Source: Tubulanus polymorphus
Lineage: Eukaryota; Animalia; Nemertea
Direction: 5' to 3'
Length of the DNA stretch: 64,000 nt
NCBI RefSeq assembly: GCF_964204645.1
Contig: NC_134033.1
Location: 3,368,131-3,432,130 of the forward strand
How positions within the stretch are numbered: position 1 is the first letter of the stretch; the number at the start of each line of letters is the position of its first letter. This document shows, one piece after another, positions 16,672 through 50,516 of this stretch. Under the pieces are notes generated by a model that was not told where the DNA came from, made no database searches, and worked only from the letters and a program-made list of their open reading frames with translations. Both the position numbers and the translations under genes were made by a program.

Positions 16672-16720
16672 CTGAAACGGCACCGATTGCGCCTACAACC
16701 AACAATATCAAAAGCTTCTT
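16672..16720 (-). pseudogene. Orphan lectin signal-peptide exon (ATG replaced by AAG)
   Basis: Reads (K)KLLILLVVGAIGAVS-G|GTAG, matching the signal exon of lectins A-D. I found no downstream exons. A palindromic MITE (16722-16835) abuts the lost start codon. Confidence 0.85.
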
Positions 16721-16949
16721 AACTTGCTCAAAAGTAGGTTAAAGATAACCAGTGGATAAATGCCATAGTAACAATGAACTGTTGATTGTCACTATGTCAA
16801 CTATCCACTGGTTAACTCTAACCTTTCAGCAACTGACTCCAGTCTGTATTGTACCTGAGCAACGATAAAAATAAACAATTCTTGTCGATTTGTTTTCAAC
16901 TATAATCTATTTATTTCATCGCTAAGTTAAACCACGCATTAAATGTATT

Positions 16950-19900
16950 TCACGGGCTCGAATTTGCTGAGGTGATTTTGCTGACGCACATAGCTCGCTT
17001 GTTCAGCCGGTATTCGCAGACGTAAGGACGTTCACACATAAGCGACGTATAGGCGGCAAATGATGCTACGAACGTGTACCACTTACCGTCGCCCATTATG
17101 AACACTTCACTACCGGAAGCATTCGGCTGATCCGTAGCCCAATTCGAGTACCCGTTCTAAAAACAAGAAGAAATCGAGACTTCGAAGTTTTCATAGTGCA
17201 AGGCAACAACGACGTTTAGGGAACCAACCCGCCAAACGATGCTCGCATAGGGTGACTGGTTTTTTGAGCAGTTCGTTATGGTTAAAATGCGGAACTTTTT
17301 TTACGGATATCAGTTAATGCCTGTCCCATTGCTCGCGATACTGTGCTCGGAGGTCAATGCCAGTCCGGCGTACCCACAGGCCTGCCGGAAGTACGTAGGA
17401 TAAGCTTACGAGTATGTTCAAGTTGTGAAATTCGGGCTCTTCAAATTCTGACTTTTTTTCTGATTTGTGTGGACAGTTCGTCGTAACATTACCGCTATAC
17501 GGTTGCTGCTGCGGCGGCAATCGAGGATAACCGCTGAAAGTACGCTCTATTTTCTAAAAAACCCTGTTTTGACGACAATCAAATGAACTACACGTGAAAC
17601 AAAAATCTTTATATCAACAGAATTAACAGACTGCGGGTTAGTTTCATACTGTATGCATACAAACCCAAATCAGGAAGAGGGGCGGAGGGAGCTTGGTAAG
17701 ATGGGGGGGGGGGGGGCGAGGAGACTGCATTTTCGCGCTGTTTTTTCAAAAACCAGACTTCGACATTCGAACTTCGAAATCGAAATTGCTTCGATTGAGG
17801 GACGCCATGAAGTATTAAAATCATAGTCATAACATAAATAGAAATATTTGTTGTATGCTGACCGGTAGTGACACCTATATCACAGCAGTGACACTTACCA
17901 AAAAACCAACAGTCATTCCAAGATTCGCCATACCATATCTGCTATTTATCAATACCTCTGTCAAAACGAAAAGGAATTTTTGAAAAAAAAGAATAGATAT
18001 CAAAATATATTCATCGTAGGTGGCTGGTATGACGGCATTTTGTCGGTGTAATTTTTAGGTAAGTGTTCGTTTTTTTACTTTATGTTAATTACCAAGGGTC
18101 AAATTGAGGACAATGCTTTCATGGTGGTTTGGGGACGAAATGACTTTAGATATGCTGGAGGTAAACTCGGTTTATGTATTTTTAGTTTGTCGATCCTTAT
18201 TTCTTATTGACCAGTAAACTAGATTAATCGATGAAATCGACGTGATATTTGTTTTTTTACAAGTAATACAATTATTTGAGGGTTAATTTTGGTTTTTATA
18301 GACTTGAGTCACCGCTCAGAAACTTAACTTTTGTTAATGACTTTTCGACTTTAATTATCCCCATCTTCTGGACCCAGTTCCACAGTCGTGAGTTAGAGTT
18401 AACTCTGCGTTCAAGTTAGTTCATTTCCGATCAGTTAACTCAGAGTAAAATCTTTACTCACAACTGTGGAACTGTTCCATTGAGTCAGTTCTACAGTTGT
18501 GAACTCTGAGTTAACTCATTGAGAATAAACTGATTTTAACTCGGGAGTTCACGACTGTGGAACTGGATTCTGGAATAAATTTATCATTATAATTGAAAGA
18601 AACGTTCCTTTTCTGAGTTTGGGATATTTCAAGAAGCAACTCTGAAATCGTTTCGGATGCCCGCATGAAACGAAACGAAATTCCGAACCGCGCTTTGTGT
18701 GAATTCCCAAAATTCCATAATTATCCAATGGGGAACCCGCGGTGCTACTGTGGCAATCGAGGATTCCGCTAATGGCAGGCGAGGATCCGCCAGTTGTCGC
18801 TAGTAGATAGTTGGTCGTCCGCGATCGATTTCTTCTGCATTTCAATTAAATCTTAATGAACTTTTCTAGCGGGTGCTGTGATGGATTCGGGAGTCTAAAA
18901 ATCCAGTTCAAAGTCCATTGAAAATGAACTAATTTTGACAACGGGCGACCTACAGCTCGTCACGCCATCTGGCGGTTTTAGCTGGTTTTTCGGGTACGCC
19001 TTTTTTTGCAACACATTCTCGATTCGTTTTATGAAATGGATTAGCGGGTATTGCATCTCTTACCTGCTGCCGCTTGATTTTCCTGCACGTTGCTAATGCG
19101 AGCCGGTGATGCGCCGGAGGGACAGATTTCTGCCAACCCGATACATTTATCCGATTCGTTAACATATATCCAACCGGAATCACATTGGGTCGACAGTGTT
19201 GTTCCTGCAACGATACATTTCGATGTTTTGAATTCGAAGAGGAGCCGTCTTAACAACGAAACGAATAGCACTTCATAGGTAAACTAAGGTCTAAGTCTAA
19301 GGCCATTTACTCTTTTATGTCAATTTCCCGACATTAGCTCTAAGCTGTATGCAGTTGTTTCTGTATCTACAATGTTTTTGTATGCAAATATGTAACTCAG
19401 TTGTACTGTTTATGTAACTCAGTTGTTGTACTGTTTATGTAACACAGTTGTTGTACTGTTTATGTAACTCAGTTGTTGTACTGTTTATGTAACTCAGTTG
19501 TTGTACTGTTTATGTAACTCAGTTGTTGTACTGTTTATGTAACTCAGTTGTTGTACTGTTTATGTAACTCAGTTGTTGTACTGTTTATGTAACTCAGCTG
19601 TTGTACTGTTTTTTCGACATTCGGTCGCTGATTAATCACCAATTTTGTAACAAGCATTATCTGTGCTCACTGCATGAAATGTATATGGAGCAATAAATAG
19701 ATAATAATAACTAGTTTATTTGACACACGAGCTTTCGCTACTAATGTACGGTAGCTTCATCAGGTGAACGAGTGACTCCTGAAGTTAACGAAAGCTCGTG
19801 CATCGACGAAAATAGTTCACCTGTAAAAGTACTGCTCGAGTCGTTATGTTTTAAATCTAATTCTTTAGCCACACAGGATGGGTCGCGGATAGGGCGCAAC

Positions 19901-20221
19901 AGGAACTTACTTGGTAAGGACGAATTTTTTAATGGGACATCGCCGTCCCAACTGGCAAACTGGCCGTTTGAACAGTTTGTGTCGTTGATTTAATTAGTTT
20001 TTTTTAGTTTTTTTGTGTAAAATTTATTTTACACTGAAACCCATTACAGGGCAACACACAATTTACAGATTTTATAATGCTATAGAAAATTCAATTACAC
20101 AATAAACTTGTTTAAATTAACAAACAGAGATAACATAGTAACTTTGATAGATGTAAACGTGCTGCCCCCTACCTGAAACGGCACCGATTGCACATACAAC
20201 CAACAATGTCAGAAGCTTCAT
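16950..20221 (-). CDS. Secreted divergent C-type lectin-like protein A (151 aa); coding exons 20221-20173, 19204-19064, 17957-17899, 17156-16950
   Basis: Canonical GT-AG introns in consistent phases (1,1,0). Protein: MKLLTLLVVCAIGAVSGTTLSTQCDSGWIYVNESDKCIGLAEICPSGASPARISNVQENQAAAEVLINSRYGMANLGMTVGFLNGYSNWATDQPNASGSEVFIMGDGKWYTFVASFAAYTSLMCERPYVCEY... It has the CTLD hallmarks CxxGW, YSNW..QP, GxW and YVCE, and AATAAA lies ~40 nt after the stop. Confidence 0.85.
18374..18567. mobile_element. Two adjacent ~100-bp palindromic MITEs (CCAGTTCCACAGT..ACTGTGGAACTGG family)
   Basis: Other copies at ~34690-34758, 41828-41933, 54790-54880 and 61038-61100. Confidence 0.75.
19390..19611. repeat. 25-bp minisatellite (TATGTAACTCAGTTGTTGTACTGTT), ~9 copies, inside a lectin A intron
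   Basis: Direct tandem units. Confidence 0.95.
19726..19766 (-). ncRNA. Penelope-type minimal hammerhead ribozyme motif
   Basis: The - strand reads CAC-CUGAUGA-A-GCUAC(cguacauua)GUAGC-GAAA-GC-UC-GUG: intact core, 5-bp stem II, palindromic stem III and 3-bp stem I. Confidence 0.75.
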
Positions 20222-20684
20222 AGCGTCTTGTATATCCAATCCTAAAAATTGGAAAAATACATCATTGACTGTTTCATTTTGAAATATGGAAATATGATCT
20301 TATTATTTGATTGGTTCGATGTTGGTGTTCATTAAACCAGTCACCACTGCCGAGATTGAGCACGGTCGCTGTAGTTCGGACCTATTTGCAAGATGGCCGA
20401 CACTGCAAAATGCGTAAGACAGCACTATAGCACGTTCGGTTATTAGTTCCGACCACTCGACCTCCTACCAAACCAAAGTTCGCCCATCCAATAGACAGTA
20501 AACCTGGCGCTGCATTTTCTTGTAAATGTTTCTTTCTCGACCAAAAACGGGTTAAATGAAGATAAGAGGACCCGGAGAAGCTTTAGACCTTCATACGTAT
20601 TCATTGGCATTATGAAAAGCCTACGTTTTATTAACATCGTACCTAACTAGCGAAACAGAGCTGCTTATGGAATTGGTGCGCAAA

Positions 20685-21530
20685 GACTCACCACTCTAAC
20701 AGACCTAGTGTTACCCGGAGACTCACCACTCTAACAGACCTAGTGTTACCCGGAGACTCACCACTCTAACAGACCTAGTGTTATCCGGAGACTCACCACT
20801 CTAACAGACCTAGTGTTACCCGGAGACTCACCACTCTAACAGACCTAGTGTTACCCGGAGACTCACCACTCTAACAGACCTAGTGTTACCCGGAGACTCA
20901 CCACTCTAACAGACCAAGTGTTACCCGGAGACTCACCACTCTAACAGACCTAGTGTTACCCGGAGACTCACCACTCTAACAGACCTAGTGTTATCCAGAG
21001 ACTCACCACTCTAACAGACCTAGTGTTACCCGGAGACTCACCACTCTAACAGACCCAGTGTTACCCGGAGACTCACCACTCTAACAGACCTAGTGTTATC
21101 CAGAGACTCACCACTCTAACAGACCTAGTGTTACCCGGAGACTCACCACTCTAACAGACCCAGTGTTACCCGGAGACTCACCACTCTAACAGACCTAGTG
21201 TTACCCGGAGACTCACCACTCTAACAGACCTAGTGTAACCCGGAGACTCACCACTCTAACAGACCTAGTGTTACCCGGAGACTCACCACTCTAACAGACC
21301 TAGTGTTATCAGGAGACTCACCACTCTAACAGACCTAGTGTTACCCGGAGACTCACCACTCTAACAGACCTAGTGTTACCCGGAGACTCACCACTCTAAC
21401 AGACCTAGTGTTACCCGGAGACTCACCACTCTAACAGACCTAGTGTTACCCGGAGACTCACCACTCTAACAGACCTAGTGTTATCCGGAGACTCACCACT
21501 CTAACAGACTTAGTCACCCAGGGATCTCAC
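20685..21530 (-). repeat. 35-bp minisatellite (24 units) derived from the lectin A 5' UTR exon and its splice donor
   Basis: The - strand unit is TCCGGGTAACACTAGGTCTGTTAGAGTG|GTGAGTC. Confidence 0.95.
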
Positions 21531-22751
21531 CTATTGAATGATAATGATTTTATGCGTTTTCACGAATTTTTTTTTAGCAACGATAAATTCAATACATTTC
21601 ATTATCAATGTACTATGTTTATTCAGATCTCATCCTAGCTACTCAAATTCTCCTGTTAAACCAAACCAGCTGCCCCTCGTCAGGATCTAACGCAAATATT
21701 CCAATTCGTTGAATATTTTTGAAAATTGTCGCGTACCAATCTTCGCTTTGTGATATATGCATTCTGCATAATCACAGATATCCCACTGCAGTCAGTTATT
21801 TTCTACAGTGAACTTGAAGTTTGATTCGTCGAAACTGAAACCAATGGGAAAACTACGTCATTTTGGTTCCGAGTGCACGAACCTTATTAGCGCTAAGCGA
21901 TGATTGGGCATGACTTGACTAGGAAAGGAGTAGGGTTGGTATAAGGGCGGGTGTGCAGAAGGGATGTGGTTAAATGCGAATGAGGCAAAGGGTAGAGCTG
22001 GGAGTGGAACTGGTGAAACAGAGACGCGAGAAAAAGGCGTGAGAAAGATGTGAATTTCATCCGTCTGCCATTTTGGTCATGATCACTATAAAGGGGAATT
22101 GTACAATTTCGTACACTCGACAAAGTGGAAATTCGTAACTAGGCCATTTGCGAATCCGATGAAGAAATTTGTTTCGTGGAAGGTACAAACAGAAATAGTG
22201 AACTAGGAAATTGACCCAGGAGATTTTTCCCCATGAATAAACAAAACATAAACTTTCAGAGTTGTTATGCATTTCAACCGTATTTTCCCTTTATTTCAGA
22301 TTTTACGAGTGCCCCCACGTGCCTCACGCGCGGCTCCAACCAGCCACAACAGATCATTTTTGTTCGATTCACCGCTAGGTGTCCTATCTGATGACGCCCA
22401 TCACCTATGACGTCTGTATAAGCTTTATCTCTTTCTAAAACAGCTCAATCCAATACGTAGCGAATCCGTATTCAATCGTTATTTTAGCAAATTTTAGGGT
22501 AATTTCTCTATTTATTTAAACCAGCTCGCTTTCGCTCTCTCTCTGGTTGGATTATTAAAAATAAGTATGAAATATCATAATCGATATATTCCGATGAAGG
22601 CCCATTCAATGAGTCGACTCGCGTACATGCGATGTGATATATAGATGTTTTGACAAGAGTGTCCTTCAACGTCTCGATCGCGTTCATGTGATATATAGAG
22701 TACACCTCGTCCATTCCTGTTACCGTTGACACTAAATCCGTGAAGAATATT

Positions 22752-24383
22752 CTACGGAAGCGATAAGTACGGAAGCGATAAGGGGCCTCGAGATGTCGCG
22801 TTCAAACTTGACAAGTCGTCATATTTATGTCGACATACCGCGATATATCGCGTCAAGTCGACATGAATATGTCGATATATCGTGACGTTTTGACGACATA
22901 TTTCGTTCTCTCGACCACTTTCCACGCGACAAGTCGACATATTCACGACGACTTGAAACTCAGTCGTCATTTCACTGGTGTCCTCATCTTCCATTTAGAC
23001 GTGTCTTCAAATGACGGCTTGTCCAGTGGAAAATTGGCGAAAAAGCGAAATTTGTCGTGAAAACGTCACGATATGTCGACATATTCATGTCGACCTGACG
23101 CGATATATCGCGATATATCGACATAAATATGGCGACTTGTCGAGTTGGAACGCGACATCTCGAGGCCCCTTATCGCTTCCGTAGGCCCAAGATTAGAATC
23201 CGGTTAAGTATTTCCAAGACTGATCACGTATTTACATCCATTCGCCCTACAGAGTCCTAACGCGATATATAGCGTCAAGTCGACATGAATATGTCGACAT
23301 ATCGTGACGTTTTCACGACAAATTTCGCTTTTTCGCCCATTTTCCACGGGACAAGCCGTCATTTGAAGACACGTCTAAATGTAAGATGAGGACGCCAGTA
23401 ATATGACGACTGAGTTTCAAGTCGTCATGAATATGTCGACTTGTCGCGAGGAAAATGGTCGAGAAAACGAAATATGTCGTCAAAACGTCACGATATAGCG
23501 ACATATTCAAGTCGACTTGACGCGACATATCGCGGTATGTCGACATAAATATGACGACTTGTCGAGTTGGAACGCGACATCTCGAGGCCCTTTATCGCTT
23601 CCGTACATCTGACTGGTTGGTTGGATAACTGGATGACCGAGTGACTAGATAACTGCAGACTCTAGTCGTCATGAATATGTCGACTTGTCGCGAGGAAAAT
23701 GGTCGAGAAAACGAAATATGTCGTCAAAACGTCACGATATAGCGACATATTCAAGTCGACTTGACGCGACATATCGCGGTATGTCGACATAAATATGACG
23801 ACTTGTCGAGTTGGAACGCGACATCTCGAGGCCCTTTATCGCTTCCGTACATCTGACTGGTTGGTTGGATAACTGGATGACCGAGTGACTAGATAACTGC
23901 AGACTCTAGTCGACTGACTAGGTGACTGTATGACTGGATGACTCCCGATATTCAAGATAAGTGTCACGTACTACGGAAGCGATAAGAGGCCTCGAGTTGT
24001 CGCGTTCCAACTCGTCAAGTCGCCATATTTATGTCGACATATCACGATATATCGCGTCAAGTCGACATGAATATGTCCTTATATCGTGACGTTTTCACGA
24101 CAAATTTCACTTTCTCGACCACTTTCCTCGCGACAAGTCGACATATTCATGACGACTTGAAACTCAGTCGTCATTTGGCGTCCTCATCTTACATTTAGAC
24201 ATGTCTTCAAATGACGGCTTGTCCAGTGGAAAATTGGCGAAAAAGCGAAATTTGTCGTGAAAACGTCACGATATGTCGACATATTCATGTCGACTTGACG
24301 CGATATATCGCGATATGTCGACATAAATATGGCGACTTGTCGAGCTGGAACGCGACAACTCGAGGCCCTTTATCGCTTCCGTA
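22752..24383. mobile_element. Cluster of ~410-bp palindromic MITEs with TACGG..CCGTA termini (two full copies, one truncated copy, one 244-bp tandem duplication)
   Basis: TIR TACGGAAGCGATAAG.GGCCTCGAG.TGTCGCGTT. Copies at 22768-23183, 23260-23604, 23665-23848 and 23972-24383. Confidence 0.9.
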
Positions 24384-24647
24384 GTGTCACTGCCAATCTA
24401 CGGCTTTTATGTCATTGTTTCCTGGTAATGTACACTCATATCCCTCTCATGCGTCCTTCAGCGCGGGCAGCGGCCGGTCAGACATTTTCTTCAGTCAAAT
24501 CGAAGTTTGACTAATCGTGATTTTCATAATAGCAACAGGCGAAAAAAAACCTATCAACAATTCTAATCGTATTGCTTTGATTTATTTCATCACTAAATTG
24601 AACACGTTAAACGTATTTTTAGCGCGGTCGAATTTTATTCAGATCGT

Positions 24648-26353
24648 TCAGACGAGCGGCCGTTGGTTTAGCGTCTGTTCACAGATATAAGGACGATCGC
24701 GAATGTGGGCGTATGCAGCTATGTAAGTATACCATTCACCGTTCGGCAAAATGAACACTTGGCTTCCATCAGGACTCGGCTGACCTGAAGCCCAATTCGA
24801 GTACCTGTTCTGAAAGAATGAAAATTAAGACTTTATATTGCAGATAGTGTAAGGAAATTCCGACTTTTATGAAGACTACCAGCGAATCTATGCCCGTAGG
24901 AAGGGCTGATTTTTGGACGCGAACCGTTTATGCATCTGTAGATATCGCATTGCGAATACGCTCCAAATTCTAGGCTTCTTATGGATTTCATCGCCAGTCC
25001 TACGTAGCTATTAGGACCGGGAGTGCATGGGACGAGCTAAGGATTTTATTCATTTTCTGAAAATTCATTCTTCAAAAGCGGACTTATTCCGATATGTGGA
25101 CAGTTCGCCATAATCCCATTAACGCTACGGGCCCGGAAACGCTGTAGCGGTAAGCGAGGATCCGCTAGGAGCGCTCTAGTCTATTAACGAAATCAACCGA
25201 GTTCTATCCAGTAGGAATAACCCCTAAATCTATATGAAAAGGGGCAGAATAGAAAGAGTGGAATAAGATGATCGGACTTTAACAGAAAAGCGCCCTATGA
25301 AATTTAACATTTCATACATTGATCAACTCAACAAACGGTGCCAGAAGAAAATCTCGGAGTACCTAATTGAACACCTCATTAGTTATATGTGTACTTACAT
25401 TCGAATTAGCGTTGTTTCCGATATTCGCCATTAATGGACTTTTCATTAGACCTGTCAAAACAAATACACGCTTGAGATACAATGAATCCTTATTTGGTTT
25501 GGACTTGATTCTTGATTCGTTTATGTAATGGACATTGTACATGTTTTCACTTACTTATCGCTGCCTGGGTTTCCTGCCAGCTACCAATACGAGCCGCTGA
25601 TGTGCCGGATGGGCAACTTTGCGCAAGCCCGATACACTTATGTGAAGCCGAAATATATTCCCAACCGGAACGACATTGTCCTGCAATGATATATTTCAAT
25701 GTTTAAAAACAAATTTTCAACCTTGCTGGGCGGGTCGATAGGGCAAACTATAAGGTTTGAAATTCCGATGAAGTCCTACAATTCGAATATTAACATGAAA
25801 TAATTCGTTGAAACGATCCCACAACGTTTCGGCTGTTGATGACTACAAACGCTAGCTTATCACTACTTTTCAATATACCATCCTCGAACAAGCAGCCAGG
25901 ACCCGTTCTCTACTCAAGACGTAAGTCCAAAAGTGTTCTTCAATCTTAAGACTGATGTTAAGTTGTTAGATTGGCTATAGATTGGATATAGATCTAAGTT
26001 GGTCTTAGACTGGTCTTAAGTCTAAGTCGTGACTATGGGACAGACCCCCCAGGGGTCAGTCGTTCAGAAATTTGTGAAAGATAGCCAGCGGTTAAATACC
26101 ATCGTAACAATGACCCCCAGGGTAACGATGAACTTTCAATATTGTCACGTTTTGAGCTACTGCTGCTTCAGGTTTACTAACCTTAGCCCCCCCCCCCCCA
26201 GAGGAAAATTGATCTCAACTAAAGTTACTGAATGATTAATTTCCAAACTTTACAGGTAATGCATTTTTTAGACACCATGTATGTGTACACGTGCTGCCCC
26301 CTACCTGAAACGGCGCCGACTACACTTACAACCAACACTATCAAAAGCTTCAT
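24648..26353 (-). CDS. Secreted divergent C-type lectin-like protein B (129 aa); coding exons 26353-26305, 25680-25555, 25451-25399, 24809-24648
   Basis: Phases are consistent. Protein: MKLLIVLVVSVVGAVSGQCRSGWEYISASHKCIGLAQSCPSGTSAARIGSWQETQAAISLMKSPLMANIGNNANSNNRYSNWASGQPSPDGSQVFILPNGEWYTYIAAYAHIRDRPYICEQTLNQRPLV*. Confidence 0.85.
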
Positions 26354-27069
26354 GGCGTCTTGTTTTTCCGATCCTAAAAATTTGAAAAAAGCTATATCAG
26401 ACTGTTCTTGAAATATTGAAATAAGGACCTATCCCTTTTCATCATTAGATTGGTTATACAAGGGGAACGAACTTCGGTTCGAGTAAGTTACCTATATTCG
26501 AACTTAAGTGAAATCGAATGTTTTTCTTAGTACAGAAATAGTCAATGACGGAATTGAATACAGTTGTTGTTGTTGTAATGGACTTACTTCCAAGATGGCC
26601 GACACGAAATGCGTTACGGCCGAACTATAGAACGTTCGGTCATTAGTGCCGACCACAAGTCAAGGCAAACAACGGAATTCGAAGTACGCCCATGCAAATG
26701 ACTGTTATAACCAGGGGTGAATGCACCGAATTTAGGTTTAAATCGGAAATTGATTACGATCTTAAAAACGCAAAAAGGACTGAAACCATTGTCCGCAGAT
26801 ATTTGCAAACGGACATAAAAAACGCCTTCTTGCAAATGTATTTTCTCTCGCCGAAGAAAACGCGTTAGGTAAAGATAAAGATCTCCTGGCGCTCAATTGC
26901 GTGAAATTTATCGTGGGAAGTGCCCAGAAGCTCTGTACCTTCAACGGTTTCGCCGGCGTTATGAAAAGTCTAATTCTTTATGAAAATTGCACCCGACTAG
27001 CAAAAACAGAGCTGTCTATATGAAATACGTATACGACGATTGCACTGACCATGACTCGAAAGATCTAGC

Positions 27070-27208
27070 GGGCCTAGCGTTGTCCAGAGACTTACCTTAC
27101 CTTACGAAACAGACCTAGCGTTGTCCAGAGACTTACCTTACGTAACAGACGTAGCATTACCCGGAATGGTGATGATAGAATGTTTTTTTCACGAATTGTT
27201 TTATATAT
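27070..27208 (-). promoter_or_regulatory. Lectin B TATA box and non-coding first exon with duplicated GTAAGT donors
   Basis: TATATAAAA at 27207-27199, then ~30 nt later TCATCACCATTC, a ~40-nt exon, and donors at ~27136 and ~27095. Confidence 0.6.
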
Positions 27209-27454
27209 GGCAAATATTCAATAAATTTTGATCGGCAATGTTTACCCAGCTCTCATTCTAACTACTCAAATTTTACTGTCAAACCAAACCAGCTGCTCTT
27301 CGTCTGGATCTAACTAACGCAAACATTCGATTTCGTAAAATATTGATAACAAGTGGTCGTTCACCAACGCTGCATGTATTCTGTATATAAAGTCCTCACA
27401 GATATCCCGCTGCAGTGACCGGTCAGATATTTTCTGCTGTAAATTTCCATTACT

Positions 27455-27775
27455 GCAGCCTTCGAAATGAATTGCTACAGGCGCATCCTGAACATCCACT
27501 GGACCAGCCATACTTCAAATGAGGAAGTCAGAGAGAGGATACAGCAGCTCATCGGGACCCATGACAGCTTCCTAGACACGGCCAAAAATAGAAAGCTTCT
27601 ATGGTTTGGCCATGTTACCCGCGCTACTGGCACGCTTACCAACGCCATACTACAAGGCTCTGTTGACGGCCAATGAAAGCGAGGCAGACGAAAGCAATGG
27701 TGGCTGGATGATGTGAAAGAGTGGTGCGGCCACCAGAATCTACCAACCTTACTAAAGCAGGCCAAAGACAGGAAG
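27455..27775 (+). mobile_element. RTE-clade LINE 3' fragment
   Basis: AFEMNCYRRILNIHW...SNEEV...RKLLWFGHVTR...ILQGSVDGQ*KRGRRKQWWLDDVKEW. It is absent from the homologous upstream region of lectin A. Confidence 0.85.
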
Positions 27776-28696: not shown

Positions 28697-31600
28697 TCAA
28701 TGATAGACAGGTGTGACAGGTTCGATGTCGAGCTCGTATTCGCAGATATAAGGCCGAGACACGCCGGCGTATTCCGCTATGTAAGTATACCATTGACCGT
28801 TCGGCAAAATGAACACTTGGCTTCCATCAGGACTCGGCTGACCTGACGCCCAATTCGAGTGCCCGTTCTAAGAATAGAAAATAACAGACGAACAAGTTCT
28901 TTATTGCAAGAAAATAGTCACAATTTTCGGAAACGAGCAGAAAACCCATCCTCCCACGGCAGGGATTCGAACCTGATGACATCGCTACACTCAGCCACGG
29001 CACGAACGTACCGTTGATAGACTGGTTGCCTGTCCCATTCAATATTCTAATTGAAGATAGAGACCGGCAACCAATCTAGTACCGTGGCAATCTCGATGCC
29101 ATCAGTTTCGAATCCCTGCCGGGGCAGGATGAGGAAAACCGTGCTCGGACCTTTTTGATGGATGTCAGTTAATGCCTATACAGTGCGTCCCAGAAAATGG
29201 TTCCTGCGAAATGATTCAATATTCATAAGTAAATCTATGTAAATAAATGAATTTTGTCATGGATTAGGAATAAGTATAGGATTTATTCTTAACATAGTAA
29301 GGATAACGTGTTAAGTCAATTTTCCATATTCTATGTTTCATAATTAAATTTTTCATCTTATCTTATCTGGGAATAATTTCTACACGTGCAGCAACCGGAC
29401 TAGACGGGGACCGGGTAACAGGTAAAAATCCCCCAAATTTGATTTCACAGCAAAATTCAATAAAATACTACCCCAGTGAAGTTTGTTACTTGTTCCTTAT
29501 TCCTTATTCCGTTACTTGATTGATAATTCATCTCCCAAGGAACAAGGAACCGTTACTTGTTCCTTATTCACATTTTCTCGTTACCACCGGTTACAGCGTC
29601 ACTTTGCTAAAGTGCTGATCAGTGTTGAGTGACAAGTGGGTTCGAGTCCTGCTGGCTGCTTACAGTGTGCGGGCAAAACTTCAAAGGCTGGTGAGGTTAA
29701 ACGAATAATCCAATAGGGTTAGTCTTGGAAAACCAAGATCCAAGTGACGTAAAGCCAAAAAACAAACAAACAAACGAAATCAATGGGGTACCCGCAGTGC
29801 TACTCAGGCGCGGATCCAGGCCATTCGGTGACTACAGCACAGTGAAAAAAAGGGCACCAAGTTGACAAGGGCCAGTATTAATGCCCAGCGAGCGAGTTTG
29901 AGTTTGAGTGCCATTTATTGGTATCATGCCACTTAATTTGCCTTAACATTCGATTTGCTTGTGCCTTTTTCAGATTTTTGGCGAAATTTGCCCTTTTTCG
30001 ATTAGATTCATAGAGCAACAATAATGTCTCTTTTAGAACAGTACCCTTTTGATTAAAGGAAAATGCGTTAGATTGCCTTTTTTGATTTTGGGCAATTCAT
30101 TTTCATTCACATTGTGCTTTAGTCCTAGTACAGAAAGGCAATTATTTTCAAAAATTTTCCAGGGCATTTGAAAACTGCGACTTCCGCACGTGCTGCGTGT
30201 GCGGTAGTCTTCTCTGCGCCTGCTACTGTGGCAATCGATGATTCCACCTATGGCAGGCGAGGATCCGCCAGGTTCGCTAGTAGATATTTGGTCGTCAGCG
30301 TTTGATTTCTTCTTCTACATTTCAATGAAATCTAAATGAACTTTTCTCTTAAATGAATCAATTATTATGAAAACTATACCGATGTCCGAGTTGAAGAATG
30401 AAAGTTAGTGAATATCCGGTGGGTGCCGGGGTGACAAAAATCCAGCGCGTTAGTGATGACAATAACCAGTCAGGACGACGGTGAGAGGGGCAGCAGGGAG
30501 GGGTGGGGCTTAAACAGAGCCGCCCTTTAGATTACACTCATCACCTGAACAAGAGGTATCAGAGAAACAAAAAAAAATTTAGAAATTATAAATAATAACA
30601 TAAAATGTAATGCATGCTGACTAGTAGTGACACCTATAATAGAGAGATGTACATACCTCCAAATTATCGGAAGTGACTCCGAGATTCCCCATCATATACC
30701 CGGCATTCTGTAATACACCTGTCAAAACAAATACTGTAGTTAGCAAAATTCACGCGCCAATTCTCAAGATTCCATAGAAATATAAGTCTTTATTGGTTTG
30801 AATTTTTAGTAAGTTTGATTTATGTTTTCGCTTACTACGTGCCGCCTGGTCTTCCTCCCCGCTACCAATACGAGCCGGTGAGGTGCCGGATGGACAAGAT
30901 TCTCTCGCAAACCCGATACACTTATACGAATCCGAAACATATTCCCAACCGGAACGACACTGCGGTGGTGTTTGTCCTGCAACGATATATTTCAACGTTG
31001 CAATGTTGCAGCGCAATGGCACCTTACTAATTAACCGGAGATTTTACCCTCTACTAGCCCGCGTTGCTCACGAGCACCATATTATCGGCCCACCTACGGT
31101 CTGATTATATGACATTTGAACTTTTAAGGCCAATGTTGCTCACAAGCAACTGCTTTAGTACCTATATCAACTGGCAGATGGCGGCACTATACGGTGTTGT
31201 TTTTCAGGGGCGTCGGTTAAAACGCATATATATCTTTTCAATACTCTGGTTGTACCTATTCTAACATATGGTAGTGAAGTATGGGGATTCGAACATGATC
31301 TTGACCAGATAGACTCTATACAGAGAACTTTTTATAAATATTTGTTAAAGCTCCATCGTAACACTCCAACTGTAATGGTTCAGGGTGAATTAGGGGAATT
31401 GCCTATTAGTTGTGTAACGTATCTTTAATAGGATTTGCTCTTACTGGTGTAAATTGAAGAATGATCCTTGTAAAGATAAATGTAATGTTATTTTGTTTAG
31501 AATCATCTCGGAATTGTCGGACAAAGGTTATATAAATTCATGATGTTGGTACGTTAAATTGAAATCTATTTTAAGACACTGCGAGTTGTTGGGCCATCTT

Positions 31601-33929
31601 GGTTGTTCAAGTATTTCAGAAACATTTCTTAAATTAAGAGTGAAACGATATTATAGTCAATACTGTACTAATTAGTTTAATGATCAAATTCAAAATGACC
31701 CACATGCTCTGTCACACATGCTCTTCGTGCGACGTTTTGGTCCGTAATTTCGTTAATGATCGGTTGATCTGTAAATATTATGCATCAATTTGTTCAGTAA
31801 GGAATTTGCATTCAGAAATGAATCATGAACTAGCATAGATTTGTTTGTGTTTTCATCTATCAGCGATAGTTTACCAAGGATACGCTCGCGTTATGCTGAA
31901 AAACGGCTTTTATGGCCCGTCACGTGGCGCCACCTACTGTATTTTGATATGCTAATGAGCAGGTGATGACGTCACTGTAACGTTTCCGAGCGTCCGCGGA
32001 GCGGATTTTTCAGCAATATGCGAGCGTATGCTGAGTAAACTATCGCTCATAAATGCAAACAAAAACAACTTTAGTGAAAATTGTTGTTTATTTCTGAATG
32101 CAAATTCCTCACTGAACAAATTGATGCGTAATAAAGGTAGATAAACCGATTATTAACGAAATTACGGACCAAAACGTCGCACGGAGAGTAGGTGTGACAG
32201 ACAGGTGTTGTTTCTATAAACTATTCAAACCCAGTTTTATGTTACAAAAGTACTTTCATTTACTTCTTGATCTCGCAATTAACTTGTGTAAATTTAGAAC
32301 CTCCAATCTTAATACTACTGCAACTAGAAACCGTATTTTCAACCTTCCTGCGAACATCGGTGATGACAAGAGCCCTCCGTGTAGAGGAAGGGTCATTTCT
32401 AATGAGTCATAGGCCTACTATATCATTCATTGTCCGTCCCTTGTATTTGAAAGACAATTTTTTTGCTGAAGTCCCGAGTGATTGTAATTTTGATAATATC
32501 CTGATTGATCTTTTTGCTCAATCACCTAAAAATCTTGCAGTTTTTTGCAAGAAACTTATTTAAAAAAATTGAATTTGTCTACCGAATGACCGCTCTCATT
32601 TGTATTTTTCTAAAGTGTTATATTTGAATCTATATCTCTATGCATATGCATGGAGAGTTATAATTAGTTACTATGTTATTTTCTGTTTGTTCATTTAGAC
32701 AAGTATATTGTGTTATTGAATTTGTTATTTTTTTATATCGTGTTATACATCTGTAAATCCTGTGTTGTCCCTCTAATACCTGTAATGGGTTTGAGTGTAA
32801 ATAAAATAAATAAAATAGATAAATAAATATTTCTCACTGGTGAATCAAACTTGGCTGACTTCATGACAAACAAGTTATGTAAAACAAAGGTAAGTTCTAG
32901 TGTATTTTCTAGTGCAAATCGGACTAAAATCATGATATAAATGAATTGCACTAACATAGGAGCACTTGAGGGATGTAACCATCGCATGAAATCAATGAAT
33001 TCTGCAAATTGCTGCTGACACAAAAGTTTATTTCAGCGTTGCTGACGAGCAACATTGGTTGAATTTGTTTTGACCTAATTCAATGCAATTGAGCTTATTG
33101 TTATTGCTAATTTAGGTAATTATTTTCATACATTTCTGATGGCCAGTAGCAGAAAATACATGCAAATACTTTTTATTTTAAGATGAAATAGCTTATAATG
33201 AACGGCATACGGTGAAAATACATTCAAATAGGAGACATTATTACATTTTGATGTAATAAGAGGAAATGAAAGCAGCAAATCGGATAGCGAAAACCTGAGT
33301 GATCCCGAGTCCGAAACAATGGACTGTCACCGTTATAGTACTATCACATGGAGTAAATTGTTATGGAGTCTAATACTAAAAGCTATTTTACTGTATTACA
33401 CTCTAAGATGATAAAGTACGAAGTAAAAGTTCGTAAATATTGGGTCATTTATCTTTATATCTTTTAAAAGGTTGAGAGCCGAATAATCAGTATCATTAAT
33501 GAATATTGGTAGGAAAAATCTGTGCGTATGGATGAATTTTTAACTTTCTAGTCATCAGTCGAGGCCAAGGTATCAAAATATGGAACTCCGAGCTGACTAG
33601 CTGATTTTTTTTGTGACAGGTCTGCAACTGTCTACCAATATTGTTCATAAGCAACATTACCAAAAACCAAAAATATGGGCCAAAAACGAATTTTGACATT
33701 GGGAATAAAAAATCTACCCCTTTACCATCTAAGTTCTCACTGGAAATAATTTTCATTCAATTAAAAAGATTGGCGAGTAGAGGGTTAAACGGGACATCGC
33801 CGGCCCAACTGGCAAATGGCCGTCTGAACAGCGGCTTGTTAATTTGATAAGTTTAATAGATGCCAGGTGTCGCCCCCTACCTGAAACGGCACCGATTGCA
33901 CCTACAACCAACAAAATCGGAAGCTTCAT
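28697..33929 (-). CDS. Secreted divergent C-type lectin-like protein C (140 aa); coding exons 33929-33881, 30976-30836, 30718-30657, 28867-28697
   Basis: Phases are consistent. Protein: MKLPILLVVGAIGAVSGQTPPQCRSGWEYVSDSYKCIGFARESCPSGTSPARIGSGEEDQAARSVLQNAGYMMGNLGVTSDNLENGHSNWASGQPSPDGSQVFILPNGQWYTYIAEYAGVSRPYICEYELDIEPVTPVYH*. Confidence 0.85.
28947..29132. repeat. ~190-bp imperfect foldback element in the last intron of lectin C
   Basis: CATCCT..CGGCAGGGATTCGAACCTGATGACATCG pairs with CGATGCCATCAGTTTCGAATCCCTGCCG..AGGATG. The inner hairpin TAGACTGGTTGCC..GGCAACCAATCTA recurs at 37375-37428. Confidence 0.8.
29616..29776 (+). mobile_element. tRNA-derived SINE (5'-truncated); paralogous copy at 38120-38272
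   Basis: B-box GGTTCGAGTCC and a 3' end GACGTAAAGCC followed by a (CAAA)n tail. Confidence 0.7.
29806..30222. mobile_element. MITE CAGGCGC..GCGCCTG with a 5-bp TSD (CTACT), nested in Rep-X
   Basis: The empty site GTGCTACTGTGGC is visible in paralog D at ~38293. Confidence 0.8.
31200..32825 (+). mobile_element. Degenerate LINE 3' fragment in a lectin C intron, split by a MITE
   Basis: VPILTYGSEVWGF...TPTVMVQGELG...LCKFRTSN; A-rich end at ~32800. Confidence 0.75.
31708..32204. mobile_element. ~500-bp MITE with ~190-bp TIRs; second copy at 45155-46380
   Basis: TIR CTGTCACAC.TGCTCT.CGTGCGACGTTT.GGTCCGTAATTTCGTTAAT and its reverse complement at the other end. Confidence 0.9.
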
Positions 33930-34347
33930 AGCGTTGCGTTTTCACAATCCTAGAAAATAGGAAAAATTTATATTAGACCACAAGTGTCGTTTACAAGCCC
34001 ACCAGTCACCCAGGAAACATGGGCAAATACGTACAGTCGAGTTCTGGCTTCAGTCGAATTTAATGGGCCCAGAAATCTTTCTACGAGATAAGTCAAAATT
34101 CGACCTAAAAGGGTTTGCACCTGGCCGTATATGGCAAATGAATAGCTATCTTTTTATCGAAATCGGGAACAATCCTCCAACAGATTGGTGGATCAAGCAA
34201 ACAATTATCACAACACAATAAGTCATTTTGATATCTGAACGAATGGATGATAAATCGTATATTTGAATAGCGTTTCTGGTTTACACTATTAGCCATCATT
34301 AGTACGCCTGATGATCACTTTCATGAATGGAGTAGTAACACGATCGT

Positions 34348-35465
34348 CGGTGTTGTCATATCGCGGAAAGACGGAATCGCGGAATTTTCCAAAAACGCGG
34401 AATTTCTTCATTTTTACTATAAATAGTAAACGGGGTTTTCCCACGGGGATACCCACTGTCGGACAGGGCACCGGACCCAGGTTTTCAACACCGGGAATTA
34501 GTATTTGATAATTTATTATATCGCCAGTCAACAACTTAACGATACTGTTCCAAATAATGGAGAACCTAGGCAATACGTGCTTTGCGAATTCAGTGATACA
34601 GAGTATCGCTGCATTAACTGAAGGAATACAAATCGATGGTACGTAAACGTAGGATTTGTGATGACATCATGGGTCATTCTCCAGGACTCATTTCCGAGTT
34701 AAGATTTGACTCTGGTCTCTGGATTTAAAACAGTTAACTCACAACTGTGGAACTGGATCGATGTCAGACGAAAATAAATAGACATTATGTATATTGCATT
34801 CTGGCTTAGGATTGTTCATGCGTGTTGTGTGTCTACATTGTTGTTATAAGCGAATGTGGTTTATCTTTTAGAATTAAATGATATGAAAGATTATAAAATG
34901 GTTTCGTTTTTTTTAAAGTTTACTTTGTGACTGCTATAACATATATGTCCCTATGCTGATTATTTGGATCAAAAGAATCTTATTGGTACCGGTACTGGAC
35001 GGCCGTAAAATTATAATAATTTCAAAGGAATTTGGACCGGTACTTGTTTGGTCGTAGGATTTCATGTTTGCAACCATCTACAACTACGGTCCTACACCGC
35101 GAACGTGCTCAATATTTATCTGATAATATTCGTTTCTGAAGTTCTCAAAAAGTCGATGAACTTCGATAACCGAAGTTTGCCTAGTAGAAATAGACATTAG
35201 GTGCCTGGTCTCTTTCACCCCACTTGATTCTGACTTCTTCTACAGGTGGCAGCCAGTCAACGGTATCGTAATATAATATTTCCATATAGAATTGCCTGCA
35301 AATAATGGGATTCGAACCTAACTCGTTGCATCGATCGGTCCGGTGCGCTGTCCGACAGTGGGTATCCCCGTGGGAAAACTCGTTTACTATTTAAAGTAAA
35401 AATGAAGAAATTCCGCGTTTTTGGAAAATTCCGCGATTCCGTCTTTCCGCGATATGACAACACCG
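34348..35465. mobile_element. Mutator-like (MULE) non-autonomous element with ~130-bp TIRs and a 9-bp TSD, carrying a USP Cys-box exon
   Basis: TIRs at 34348-34477 and 35337-35465. TSD CACGATCGT/CACTATCGT. The empty site is in paralog D at ~39793. The superfamily is inferred from TSD length and long TIRs only. Confidence 0.8.
34557..34638 (+). pseudogene. Ubiquitin-specific protease (peptidase C19) Cys-box exon fragment
   Basis: MENLGNTCFANSVIQSIAALTEGIQID-G|GTACGT matches the USP catalytic Cys box GLxNLGNTCFxNSxLQ. Confidence 0.75.
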
Positions 35466-35626
35466 CACTATCGTGGGACATTCTAAACGAGGGTTGATCG
35501 GTCGCAGTAATTGTCGTGAAATCGAAGAGATTTCAATGAAAATTATTTTTTTCATGTACTGAACCACTGCCCTGAATTTGAATCTAAGATTCGACTCAGA
35601 GTTAACTAATTGAAAGTATACTGATA

Positions 35627-36016
35627 TTGCCTATTCAGCAGATCTAGTGTTGCTCAAAGACTTGTCTATTCAGTAGACCTAGTGTCGCCCAGAGACTTGC
35701 CTATTCAGCAGATCTAGTGTCGCCCAGAGACTTGCCTCTTCAGTAGACCTAGTGTCGCCCAGAGACTTGCCTATTCAGTAGGCCTAGTGTCGCCCAGAGA
35801 ATTGCCTCTTCAGTAGACCTAGTGTCGCCCAGAGACTTGCCTATTCAGTAGGCCTAGTGTCGCCCAGAGAATTGCCTCTTCAGTAGACCTAGTGTCGCCC
35901 AGAGACTTGCCTATTCAGCAGATCTAGTCACCCAGAGACTTACCTATTTACGGAGCAGACCTAGCGTTAACCAGAATGGTAATGATATGGCTTGTTTTGA
36001 CGAATTGTTATATACT
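35627..36016 (-). repeat. Lectin C TATA box, first exon and 35-bp donor minisatellite (~9 units)
   Basis: TATATAAC at ~36010. The first donor is AATAG|GTAAGT (~35943), followed by units TCTGGGCGACACTAGGTCTACTGAATAG|GCAAGTC. Confidence 0.85.
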
Positions 36017-37759
36017 GACGAAAATTCAATAAATTCTATCATCAATATTTACTCAGCTATCATTCTATGACTACTCTAAATTCTCCTCTTAAATCGATAG
36101 AAGCGAAAACAGTACAAATTTTATTTTCTAACGAGTATATAAATTCATTCTAGCAAGCACCTTCTGAGCACCTGGTATCATGATTGGTAGAGAACCCGGA
36201 CAGGGCGGCTATTCGATCTTTTTTCTCACTCACGCAAACCCAGCGGGGGGGGGGGGGCTGATGAGTTGCAGAATAAATCGTATGTTTCAAAGCCTGGCAA
36301 AGCTAGGCGCGTGGATGATACGTAAAAGTTAGGTATAGGGGATTTCGAGAGCAGGGACCAAGAAATGTACTTTCGTTCGAATCGACCCAAATCCGAAATG
36401 AGCTCGTCAAAAGTAACAGTACATTGATGATATTTCCAACAACACATATACATAAGTTTACGTCGTCGTAGTCTGATGATTTATTTTTTTCATTCATATA
36501 ATACTCATTCATTTCAGATCGTGGAGGTCCGTCTAGGTCTATATAGAAAATATTTGTAATAAAACATAACCGATAAGATTATAACATTTATAGAAACGTG
36601 TATCGAATTCGAACAAAAGGCCGCATCAAGTTGAGATTAAAAAAATAACCATACAAGGATAATGATCCCCCTATAACATCCCAATAACAAAGCTGAAAAA
36701 TTAAATAATTCGAAAAAAGAACCGCAATTGGAAATCCTATGCCAACTGTTTATGTGAGATATCACGGTGCGCATAGGCTATGACCAGAGATACTGTTCTA
36801 CCGCGTGAAACCAGTATAACGCATTCAAGTGTTTTTTACACCGGCTAAAAATTCAATAAATTTCATGATCCGAATATTTACCGAGCTCTCATTCTAGCTG
36901 CTCATGTTTCGCCGCTGAACGAAACCAGCTGCTCCACGTTAGGATCGAAGGCAAATAGCCGATTTTCCAGAAAGCGTCACTCGACAATCCTCGCCTTCTG
37001 GTTTAATCTACTTGCATTGTTTCCTGGTATGTACGTAGTTTCCTATCCCTCTCACACATCCGTCTCACAAGAAACGGTTCCTTGTTCCTTATTACTACTC
37101 ACATACCCAGAGATAGTACAGGACCGAAGACTCGGCCAAGAGAGTATCCCTACACTGCAAAAGATACGCTACCACAACATACGTGGAGAAGCTAAACCAG
37201 ATCCATAACAGTGGCGGAGAACCACAACAAAACCATCAAAATCGAAGGAACGCGAAAAAAGTCGTTTTAAGACTTTTGATTCCGTTGAACCAACATTGTA
37301 TCCGAGACTACACTGATCTGAAAGGCCGAAAAGTCACCTGCCAAGAACGCTGGTCAATTAGCCTGACCAATCCGTAGACTGGTTGCCTGTCCCATTCTAT
37401 TGAAGATATTGACCGGTAACCAGTCTAGGCCAATCACAGTGTGGTCTTTTTTCTGGCACGTTTCGCCAAAAACCACCGAAACCGATAAGAATTACAACAA
37501 TTGAACCTGAAACATCCCTATCTGTCCCACCTTCTCTGCAGTTCGATAGTTCAGAATCGGATGTACCGGGTTCGAACCAGTCTCTGGTCATATCCTCTCA
37601 GGTGTCACATATCCATCCTCGCATGTAGTCTGTTCGACATCCCTCCAGCGCAAAAAAGACAATAAACAATTCTTATAGTCTTGTTTTGATTTATTCAATC
37701 GCGGAATAAAAAATTAACATGTTGATATGAAATTAACATGTTTTTAGCGCGGTCGAATT

Positions 37760-39331
37760 CTATTTGGATCTCGTTCGGATGCAATCAAAGGGGTGCCAAT
37801 CTCGTCGGTTCAGCGTATATTCACAGATATTAGGACGGCGATATGCACCGAAGGGGTATTCCGCTATGTAAGTAAACCAATCACCGTTCAGCAAAATGAA
37901 CACTTGACTTCCATCAGGACTCGGCTGATCTGATGCCCAATTCGAGTACCCGTTCTAAAAGGTGGAAAATTGAGATTTTATAATGTGGATAGTGCCAGGA
38001 AAAATCCAACTTAATCTATTCATATGGCAACTACCAGGTAAACTATGCTCGTAGCAGAGACTGTTTTTTGGAAGTTCATGATCGTTAAAAAGGGAGGTGT
38101 TTTGACGGATGCTACAGTTCTGATCAGTGTTGAGTGACAAGTGGGTTCGAGTCCTGTGCGGGCAACACTTGAAATCCCGTTCTTTTGTGAGGTTAAATGA
38201 ATAATCCAATAGGGTTAGTCTTCGGAAACCAAGATCCAAGCGACGTAAAGCCAAAAAACAAACAAACAAACGAAATCAATGGGGTACCCGCTGTGCTACT
38301 GTGGCAATCGAGGATTCCACCTATGGCAGGCGAGTATCCGCCTTGTAGATATTTGGTCGTCCACGTTCGATTTCTTCCACATTTCAATGAAATCTAAATG
38401 AACTTTTCTTTTTCTCTTAAACAAATTAATGATCATGAAAACTATACCGATATCCGAGTAGAAGAATGCAAGTTAGTGAATATTTGGTGGGTGCTGGGGT
38501 AATAAAATCCAGTGTGTTAGTGATGATAATAACCAGTCTGGACGACAGCGAGAAGGGCAGCAGGGAGGGGTGGGGCTTTAAACAGAGCCGCCCTTTAGAT
38601 AACACTCATCACCTCAACAAGAGGTATCAGAGAAACATAAAAGAAGTTTCGCAATTATAAATAATAACATATAGTGTAATGTATGCTGACTAGTAGCGGC
38701 ACCTATAGCAGAGAGATGTACATACCTCTAAATTATCGGAAGTGACTCCGAGATTCGCCATCATATACCCGGCATTCTGTAATACACCTGTCAAAACAAA
38801 TACTGTAGTTAGCAAAATTCACGCGCCAATTCTCAAGATTCCATAGAAATATAAGTCTTTATTGGTTTGAATTTTTAGTTTGATTTGATTTTTTGATTCG
38901 TTTAATTATGAAGAAATGGACATTTATGTTTTCGCTTACTACTTGCCGCCTGGTCTTCCTCCCCGCTACCAATACGAGCCGGTGAGGTGCCGGATGGACA
39001 AGATTCTGTTGTAAACCCGATACACTTATCCGAATCCGAAACATATTCCCAACCGGAACGACACTGCGGTGGCGTTTGTCCTGCAACGATTTATTTCAAT
39101 GTTTTAAATCCAATTCCTTAACCATACTCAGGATGGGTCGATACAGGGCGCAATGGAAGCTTACTAATTAAGCGGGGATTTCAAACGGGACATCGCCGGC
39201 CCAACTGGCAAATGGCCGTCTGAACAGCGGCTTGTGACGTTAATTTGAATGTTTTAATCGATGTACACGTGTCGCCCCCTACCTGAAACGGCACCGAATA
39301 CACCTACGAACAACAAGATCGGAAACTTCAT
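37760..39331 (-). CDS. Secreted divergent C-type lectin-like protein D (148 aa); coding exons 39331-39283, 39080-38940, 38787-38726, 37954-37760
   Basis: Phases are consistent. Protein: MKFPILLFVGVFGAVSGQTPPQCRSGWEYVSDSDKCIGFTTESCPSGTSPARIGSGEEDQAASSVLQNAGYMMANLGVTSDNLENGYSNWASDQPSPDGSQVFILLNGDWFTYIAEYPFGAYRRPNICEYTLNRRDWHPFDCIRTRSK*. Confidence 0.85.
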
Positions 39332-39944
39332 AGCTTCGCGTTTTCACAATCCTAGAAAATAGGAAAAATCTATATTAGACTTGAAATAGGGACCTATCCC
39401 TTTGACCATCTGATCGATTTGATTTTATATGATTATTTGTTGGTGTCGTTTACAAGCCCACCACCAGTCACCCAGGAAACATGGGCACATACGTACAGTC
39501 GAGCTCTGGCCTTAGTCGAATTTAATTGGTCCAGAAATTTTTCTACGAGATATGTCAAAATTCGACCTAAAAGGGTTTGCGCCTGGCCGTATATGGCAAA
39601 TGAATAGTTATCTTTTTATCGAAATCGGGAACAATCCTCCAACAGATTGGTGGATCAAGCATCACAACACAATAAGTCATTTTGATATCTGAACGAATGG
39701 ATGATAAATCGTATATTTGAATAGCGTTTCTGGTTTACACTATTAGCCATCATTAGTACGCCTGATGATCACTTTCATGAATGGAGTAGTAACACTATCG
39801 TGGGACATTCTAAACGAGGGTTGATCGGTCGCAGTTAGTAGTTGTCATGAAATCCAAGAGATTTCGATGAAAATTATTTTTTTGATGTACTGAACCACTA
39901 ACCTGAATTTGAATCTAAGAGTTAACTAATTGAGAGTATAGTGA

Positions 39945-40269
39945 TCTTGCCTATTCAGCAGATCTAGTGTCACCCAGAGACTTGCCTATTCAGCAGATCT
40001 AGAGTCGCCCAGAGAATTGCCTCTTCAGTAGACCTAGAGTCGCCCAGAGAATTGCCTATTCAGTAGACCTATAGTCGCCCAGAGAATTGCCTATTCAGTA
40101 GACCTAGTGTCGCCCAGAAACTTGCCTATTCAGTAGGCCTAGTGTCACCCAGAGGCTTGCCTATTCAGCAGATCTAGTCACACAGAGACTTACCTATTTA
40201 CGGAGCAGACCTAGCGTTAACCAGAATGGTAACGATATGGCTTGTTTTGACGAATTGTTATATATATAC
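39945..40269 (-). repeat. Lectin D TATA box, first exon and 35-bp donor minisatellite (~7 units)
   Basis: Same architecture as copy C; TATATATATAAC at ~40260. Confidence 0.85.
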
Positions 40270-40958
40270 TGACGAAAATTTAATAAATTCTATGATCAAT
40301 ATTTACTCAGCTATCATTCTGACTACTCTTCATTCTCCTCTTAAATCGATAGAAGCGAAAACAGTACATTGGTAAATTGGAAATCCTATGCCAACTGTTT
40401 ATGTGTGAGATATCACGGTGCGCATAGGTTATGACCAGAGATACTGTTCTACCGCGTGCAACCAGTATAACGCATTCAAGTGTTTTTTACACTGGCTAAA
40501 AATTCAATAAATTTCATGGTCCGAATATTTACCGAGCTCTCATTCTAGCTGCTCATGTTTCGCCGGTGAACGAAACCAGCTGCTCCTCGTTAGGATCGAA
40601 GGCAAATATTCGATTTTCCAGAAAGCGTCACTCGACAATCCTCGCCTTCTGGTTTAATCCACATGTTTCCTGGTATGTACGTAGTTTCCCATCCCTCTCA
40701 CATATGTCCCGCCAGTGACCGACCAGACGCCATTTTCTTCAGCCGTGAAATGGACATTTTCTTCTTTGGAAATCGACATCCTCTCGAATGTGAAACCGAA
40801 GTTTGACGAATTGAAATTTCGGAAACACGTTTTTCATAAAGGCAAATGATATGAATAAGGAGAAAACTTCAGGAAGAAGCCATCCTACGACCGACGAGGA
40901 TAAAGCTAATAGCTTCCATCGCGCTGGAGAGGTATTCGAGGCTAGTAATTTTGGGTAT

Positions 40959-50507: not shown

Positions 50508-50516
50508 CGACGAATC

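Follow-up and report, generated by a model that had tools for sequence, protein, structure and literature searches.

A small tandem gene family of the ribbon worm Tubulanus polymorphus predicted to encode reduced, secreted C-type-lectin-like domains

The genes and their public annotation

The ribbon worm Tubulanus polymorphus carries a small gene family whose products we predict to be secreted proteins built on a strongly reduced C-type-lectin-like domain (CTLD), and four of its members lie side by side on the minus strand of the 64,000-nt stretch of DNA analysed here (the window; contig C9, 3368131-3432130). The window is ~40% G+C, is without long open reading frames (ORFs) and holds many satellites and retroelement fragments. 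Motif scans of the six frames followed by reading of the splice boundaries resolve the four genes, A to D, into four coding exons each, with GT-AG introns throughout, intron phases 1/1/0 and no internal stops. Gene A (LOC141911231, 16950..20221) has its coding exons at 20221-20173, 19204-19064, 17957-17899 and 17156-16950 and encodes 151 aa counted from an MKLL start; gene B (LOC141911232, 24648..26353) has exons at 26353-26305, 25680-25555, 25451-25399 and 24809-24648 and encodes 129 aa. The exons of gene C (28697..33929) lie at 33929-33881, 30976-30836, 30718-30657 and 28867-28697 and give a product of 140 aa, and those of gene D (LOC141911234, 37760..39331) lie at 39331-39283, 39080-38940, 38787-38726 and 37954-37760 and give a product of 148 aa. 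Exon 1 is an ATG plus 16 codons and ends in phase 1 at TCAG/gtaggg (the slash marks the splice boundary), exon 2 likewise terminates in phase 1, exon 3 measures 53-62 nt and terminates in phase 0, and exon 4 extends to the stop codon. The signal peptide of 16-19 residues is encoded on an exon of its own, and the single domain that follows it spans ~110-135 residues. The hydrophobic N-terminal exon, the small residues before its junction and the absence of any other hydrophobic segment suggest that the proteins are secreted.

A relic signal-peptide exon lies at 16673..16721 on the minus strand; it reads AAG at the position of the ATG, retains an intact donor and is 83-91% identical to the live copies of exon 1. 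No copies of exons 2-4 were found after it by genome-wide searches with profiles of exons 4 and 2. A first-pass annotation of the window had proposed four complete spliced genes and one relic exon, and both proposals hold, as the last exons with their conserved frame and variable segments occupy the minus-strand places it had assigned to them and the relic is a fifth copy of exon 1 in the window that has lost its ATG and kept its donor. The genome-wide collection of paralogues that it had suggested gave five copies in all: across the 268-Mb, 77-contig assembly the exon-4 and exon-2 profiles detect exactly five loci, the four tandem genes and one on contig C33. This fifth copy, gene E (C33:94464-96538), is intact and has four exons with the same intron phases, a 19-residue signal exon and a QPD motif. 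Among 1.84 billion representative proteins the exon-4 profile found no orthologue; beyond members of the family itself its matches were mostly Lectin_C proteins of snail, mayfly, bivalve and fish (E 6.5e-15 to 5e-4), with unrelated bacterial repeat proteins interspersed. Word-based homologue searches with RefSeq protein P0002 and with the family alignment returned nothing beyond the family, and a literature search found no paper on the five genes. This is a small lineage-specific family, so far seen in one species.

The genes had been described as hidden, which holds for the ORF list, from which they are absent, and fails for the public databases, in which three of the five are present as RefSeq proteins, all labelled "uncharacterized protein". 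These are the three close proteins that the exon-4 peptide profile retrieves from the representative proteins. P0001 (XP_074658315.1) is identical to the product of our gene B, and P0002 (XP_074658314.1) agrees with our gene A from the MKLL start onward but begins 11 residues earlier. These 11 residues come from an additional short 5′ exon in the RefSeq model, which has an upstream ATG at 20637 and ends AAAAC/gtaggc at 20625. The two public predictions lend independent support to our models of A and B. P0009 (XP_074658319.1) is the RefSeq version of gene D, a 112-aa variant that splices out of exon 4 at a GT within the N-G-x-W codons, omits the remaining 3′ part of the exon, W-x-T strand and stop codon included, and takes a final small exon near 36090, within the upstream region of gene C. 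The N-G-x-W codons contain such a GT in all four exon-4 copies of the array (37876-37882 in D), and in gene A it forms a perfect G/GTAAGT. The RefSeq isoform of gene D would delete strand beta-4, the loop after it and beta-5; it may be genuine, a truncated splice form, or else an artefact of read-through. Neither of the two protein databases searched holds a protein for gene C or gene E. Because the RefSeq entries are assigned to T. polymorphus, a human or contaminant origin of the window was rejected.

A reduced C-type-lectin-like domain

We place the family in the CTLD superfamily because several lines of evidence, each weak individually, are convincing together; the proteins are not C-type lectins in the strict sense. 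Searched against the PDB, the exon-4 profile returns CTLDs in 31 of 39 matches, the best being mannose-binding protein (MBP, E 1e-3), and lays the family motif Y-S-N-W-A-x-x-Q-P onto Y-x-N-W-x-x-G-E-P-N. A profile of the whole protein finds CTLDs exclusively (16 of 16 matches), with an alignment that starts at helix alpha-2, reaches the C-terminus and pairs W-Y-T with the W-N-D of MBP-A. Detectable sequence homology to CTLDs is limited to the C-terminal two thirds. Of 30 neighbours by feature in the ESM Atlas, 29 carry Lectin_C, as do all ten structural neighbours listed, for A and B both (template-modelling score, TM, 0.53-0.72; mean predicted local distance difference test, pLDDT, of the models 0.70-0.74). 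AlphaFold2 models of two members were built from a family alignment of nine rows, with the misaligned exon 3 of the fifth copy dropped from the folding alignments. From these low-confidence models, the top Foldseek matches of both are CTLDs only (E down to 7e-4), and a VIA search of 48,161 representative chains, which is independent of Foldseek, gives 69 matches at Z >= 2, of which the top 39 are all CTLDs. The best of these are Codakine (Z 7.5, 81 residues aligned, root-mean-square deviation 4.5 Å) and CD302 (Z 7.2), and the top matches cover the mature domain in full (model residues 31-148). The lectin-like domain that had been read from the sequence is supported, in a reduced form, and the comparison with CTLD structures that had been suggested as a check came out the same way.

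What the proteins retain of the fold is the long-form N-terminal cysteine pair (Q-C ... K-C), the cysteines C1 and C4, helix alpha-2 and strands beta-2 to beta-5. None of the five copies departs from C-P-S-G at C1 or from [IV]-C-E at C4, and we predict a C1-C4 disulfide; the total number of cysteines is odd (five) in gene D only. C2 and C3 are absent. The family's V-F-I aligns to the '(E)DCV' of MBP and SP-D, with a 3-residue gap just before beta-3, and contains no cysteine, and in the connector after the WND strand, where canonical CTLDs have C3, copies B, C, D and E have none, while A has a single cysteine in the loop and lacks C2. The position of the EPN or QPD motif reads QPS in B, C and D, QPN in A and QPD in E, and every copy has W-[YF]-T in place of WND, so that no copy has the EPN/QPD and WND combination and Ca2+ site 2 cannot form. 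The WIGL position is occupied by MANLG, MANIG or VVGDF.

Two further parts of the domain are shortened. Helix alpha-1 of canonical CTLDs lies between the beta-1 cysteine and C1, an interval that in the family is only 5-7 residues long; in MBP-A, which has a short-form carbohydrate-recognition domain, 15 residues separate Y108 on strand beta-1 from C1 (C124). Both AlphaFold2 models, low in confidence as they are, show a single helix in the mature domain, and together with the MBP-A comparison they suggest that helix alpha-1 has apparently been lost. The stretch from beta-2 to Y-x-N-W is likewise short, and most of the long loop region is lost.

Variation among the copies and its interpretation

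Mean pairwise identities, taken from exon-by-exon alignments of the five genes, separate a conserved framework from variable segments. The signal peptide (0.66), the exon-2 core (0.65), the exon-4 core before the loop (0.59) and the R-P...C-E...L block (0.64) are conserved, exon 3 is intermediate (0.35), and the mature N-terminus (0.10), the loop after W-x-T (0.08) and the C-terminal tail (0.06) share little. The most variable internal segment is this loop, which has 4-9 residues and a different length in every copy: on the minus strand it reads AAYTSLMCE in gene A (17031..17057), AHIRD in B (24696..24710), AGVS in C (28757..28768) and PFGAYR in D (37838..37855). An internal loop that changes sharply in sequence and length had been reported in the first-pass annotation, and it is real; its boundaries are narrower than the whole segment between W-x-T and RP, as the preceding [YF][IVY][AQ]x[YF] is a conserved strand and these 4-9 residues alone vary. 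Its assignment to the WND/beta-4 ligand-binding surface stands to the extent that W-x-T aligns with the WND of MBP-A, whereas the variable part is the connector after that strand and not the Ca2+/sugar site. The C-terminal tails, once called unrelated, are indeed highly variable, yet A, B, D and E share a Y/Q-x-L-N/D-x-R start. Variation is also not confined to one loop, as had been supposed, but falls in four patches: the mature N-terminus, exon 3, the loop and the tail.

At the DNA level 57-83% of aligned loop positions differ between copies, in addition to gaps, against 6-30% in the exon flanks (p = 1.7e-7 to 0.05). In the adjacent intron, over the 100 nt just upstream, 29-49% of positions differ. 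Compared with this intron the loop has no significant excess of divergence in four of six pairs, and the two pairs that do show one, B-D (clearly, p = 5e-4) and A-D (marginally, p = 0.04), both rest on gap-rich alignments. Part of the B-D difference looks like the product of small compensating indels, which break the frame singly and preserve it together.

The ratio of the proportions of nonsynonymous and synonymous differences (pN/pS) in the core is 0.42-0.61 and lies significantly below 1 in the older pairs (p = 1.8e-5 to 7e-3), which argues that the genes are maintained. When the variable patches are pooled, pN/pS is 0.5-1.1 and in no pair exceeds 1 significantly; in nine of ten pairs the ratio does not differ significantly from 1, and in the remaining pair, A-E, it is 0.53 (p = 0.02). 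The loop alone, with ~3 synonymous sites per pair, gives values scattered between 0.24 and 3.9. Relaxed constraint would be enough to account for this pattern, and five sequences neither show positive selection nor rule it out. Up to the loop, exon 4 of B, C and D has a pS of 0.10-0.15, below the intron mismatch of 0.29-0.49, and exon 3 of B is further from those of C and D than exon 3 of A is; the two observations hint at mosaic evolution or gene conversion. Programmed diversification, by a system like a diversity-generating retroelement (DGR) or otherwise, was considered and rejected, as nothing in the locus suggests one.

We regard it as probable that these genes form a family of reduced, CTLD-derived secreted single-domain proteins whose variable segments are essentially unconstrained. 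In such a history local duplication would have built the family, with C and D the youngest pair, preceded by B and then by A. The core would be under moderate purifying selection, while four surface segments, namely the mature N-terminus, the post-beta-2 stretch in exon 3, the beta-4/beta-5 connector and the C-terminal tail, would be close to unconstrained and gather substitutions and small, partly frame-shifting indels. Loss of the C2-C3 disulfide, the normal anchor between this connector and beta-3, may leave the connector free to vary. The products would be secreted, soluble binding proteins that act independently of Ca2+, and not classical lectins, the binding role and the Ca2+ independence both being our inference; they could plausibly act in mucus, in the secretion of the proboscis or in humoral defence.

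Several observations weigh against this reading. Pfam Lectin_C (PF00059) matched neither the single exons at E <= 10 nor full-length P0001, P0002 and P0009 at E <= 1, and a genome scan with PF00059 at E <= 0.001 gave at least 63 matches elsewhere, with none listed in the array. The exon-2 profile retrieved no CTLD from the PDB, where its one match is irrelevant. The AlphaFold2 models are weak (pLDDT 53 and 57, predicted TM score, pTM, 0.49), and every structural Z lies below 8, a range which, the tool warns, can mean a common arrangement only. The RefSeq model of gene D truncates the domain, and C and E are without a database protein. Finally, five sequences cannot separate relaxed constraint from diversifying selection.

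That last point bears on the strongest alternative, a diversifying recognition, defence or toxin repertoire in which positive selection acts on the beta-4/beta-5 loop, and perhaps on the exon-3 patch, and each paralogue has its own target. The loop differs between B and D at 10 positions against 2 matches, with ~10% difference in the flanks (p = 1.7e-7; p = 5e-4 to 0.05 in the other pairs), its length is unique to every copy, and the low pS of B, C and D exon 4 relative to the intron would fit a homogenisation that spares the loop. In canonical CTLDs both internal variable patches fall in the ligand-binding half, which also speaks for a repertoire. However, there are only five copies genome-wide, the pooled pN/pS of the variable patches is not significantly above 1, the loop is not significantly more diverged than the intron in four of six pairs, the termini vary as much as the loop, and the alignment reads as though compensated frame-shifting indels explain part of the loop difference. 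A diversifying repertoire on one loop, as the first-pass annotation had it, is a hypothesis that five copies, four patches and a pN/pS not significantly above 1 do not support, and we consider a repertoire of this kind unlikely. A bolder form of the idea, which seems to us less likely again, would make the family a new minimal CTLD scaffold, lacking alpha-1 and held by C1-C4 and the long-form pair, in which the unpinned connector and the post-beta-2 patch form an adaptively diversifying binding face that acts in secretions (mucus, proboscis fluid, immune factors) with a target per paralogue.

It is very improbable that the genes are decaying duplicates or gene-prediction artefacts without function. 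The relic exon shows that copies are lost, C and E are the copies that the databases lack, RefSeq leaves out the 3′ part of exon 4 in gene D, and the 90% clusters of P0001, P0002 and P0009 hold RefSeq sequence only, from one contig, with no transcript-derived copy in the collection. Against this, all five copies keep open frames, splice sites, intron phases and the four core cysteines, and the core pN/pS is significantly below 1. A small cysteine-containing secreted fold of another kind that mimics a few CTLD motifs would account for the silence of Pfam Lectin_C, the N-terminal half without a significant CTLD sequence match and the low-confidence models, but five approaches put CTLDs on top, four of them exclusively, and its chances are slimmer still.

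Surrounding sequence and known relatives

Repeats are plentiful around the genes whose products we read as reduced CTLDs. A 35-bp minisatellite of 23.7 copies (20684..21514) lies upstream of gene A, and the other three genes have related 35-bp arrays on their upstream sides, at 27073-27155 (B), 35627-35948 (C) and 39946-40198 (D), at distances of a few hundred to ~1,700 bases from the genes; the minus-strand unit includes GGTGAGT, and the end of the RefSeq 5′ exon of gene A (20625) is ~60 bases 3′ of the array. The repeats could belong to a promoter, to a 5′ exon or to neither. Between A and B, 22767-24384 holds direct and inverted ~240-bp repeats, 80-98% identical, with many short mutually antisense ORFs. 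Inverted repeats of ~140 bp (95.7% identity; 34339-34477 and 35337-35475) enclose ~860 bp upstream of gene C, and this element together with other insertions accounts for the longer upstream region of C as compared with D. A short interspersed repeat of ~140-160 bp is found in intron 3 of A, C, D and E and is a mobile element, not an exon; in the window it occurs in both orientations at 18726-18867, 30221-30376 (the copy in C), 38277-38409, 41586-41739 and 44765-44935, and at the gene E locus at about 2566-2763 of an excerpt of C33 in which gene E occupies 868-2942.

Elsewhere in the window a 61-bp satellite of 55 copies (2231-5589; 95% identity) lies in a stretch whose G+C is raised to 0.51-0.52. 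Two single-exon ORFs lie on the plus strand: 49614-51461 encodes a rhodopsin-like G-protein-coupled receptor whose N-terminal half is an in-frame 19-bp tandem array of 42.8 copies, and 55290-56753 encodes a MATE-like transporter of 487 aa.

The closest known relatives, and the best matches of the family in both sequence and fold, are canonical CTLDs (PF00059; collectins MBP-A and SP-D, CD302, bivalve lectin Codakine), with which it shares the order of beta-0/beta-1 and long-form cysteines, alpha-2, beta-2, Y-x-N-W-x-x-x-Q-P, beta-3, the W-x-T/WND strand and a beta-5 'ICE' with C4. Unlike them, the family is without the C2-C3 pair and the calcium site, has an eroded WIGL, falls below Pfam detection, is ~10 residues short at the position of alpha-1 and has a shorter span from beta-2 to Y-x-N-W. 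In consisting of a signal peptide and one CTLD of ~110-135 residues only, the proteins resemble vertebrate proteins of group VII (REG/lithostathine; type II antifreeze proteins) and the snaclecs of snake venom, and many free single-CTLD secreted proteins bind no sugar. These families, however, retain both core disulfides and alpha-1. Snaclecs, which occur among the fold matches, are loop-swapped heterodimers, whereas there is no sign of dimerisation in the Tubulanus family. In fish antifreeze-like CTLD genes an intron lies just downstream of the WIGL position, as it does here (PMC514892).

The CTLD expansions of other invertebrates (nematode clec, mollusc and insect CTL-S) likewise arose by tandem duplication and have secreted single-domain products with fast-evolving loops, but the present family numbers only five genes, is so far confined to one species and has a far more eroded domain. 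Ribbon-worm secretions have been studied for toxins. Conventional C-type lectins are among the toxin candidates of another ribbon worm (PMC7460313), and nothing ties the family to them.

The cluster is an ordinary lineage-specific tandem family, partly annotated already, and gives no evidence of a novel system of immunity or of generating diversity; what is new is how strongly a very common domain is reduced here. Should this be confirmed, the proteins would rank with the most reduced CTLDs of animals, which would be of modest interest for the limits to which the fold can be trimmed and for the annotation of "uncharacterized" secreted proteins of nemerteans.

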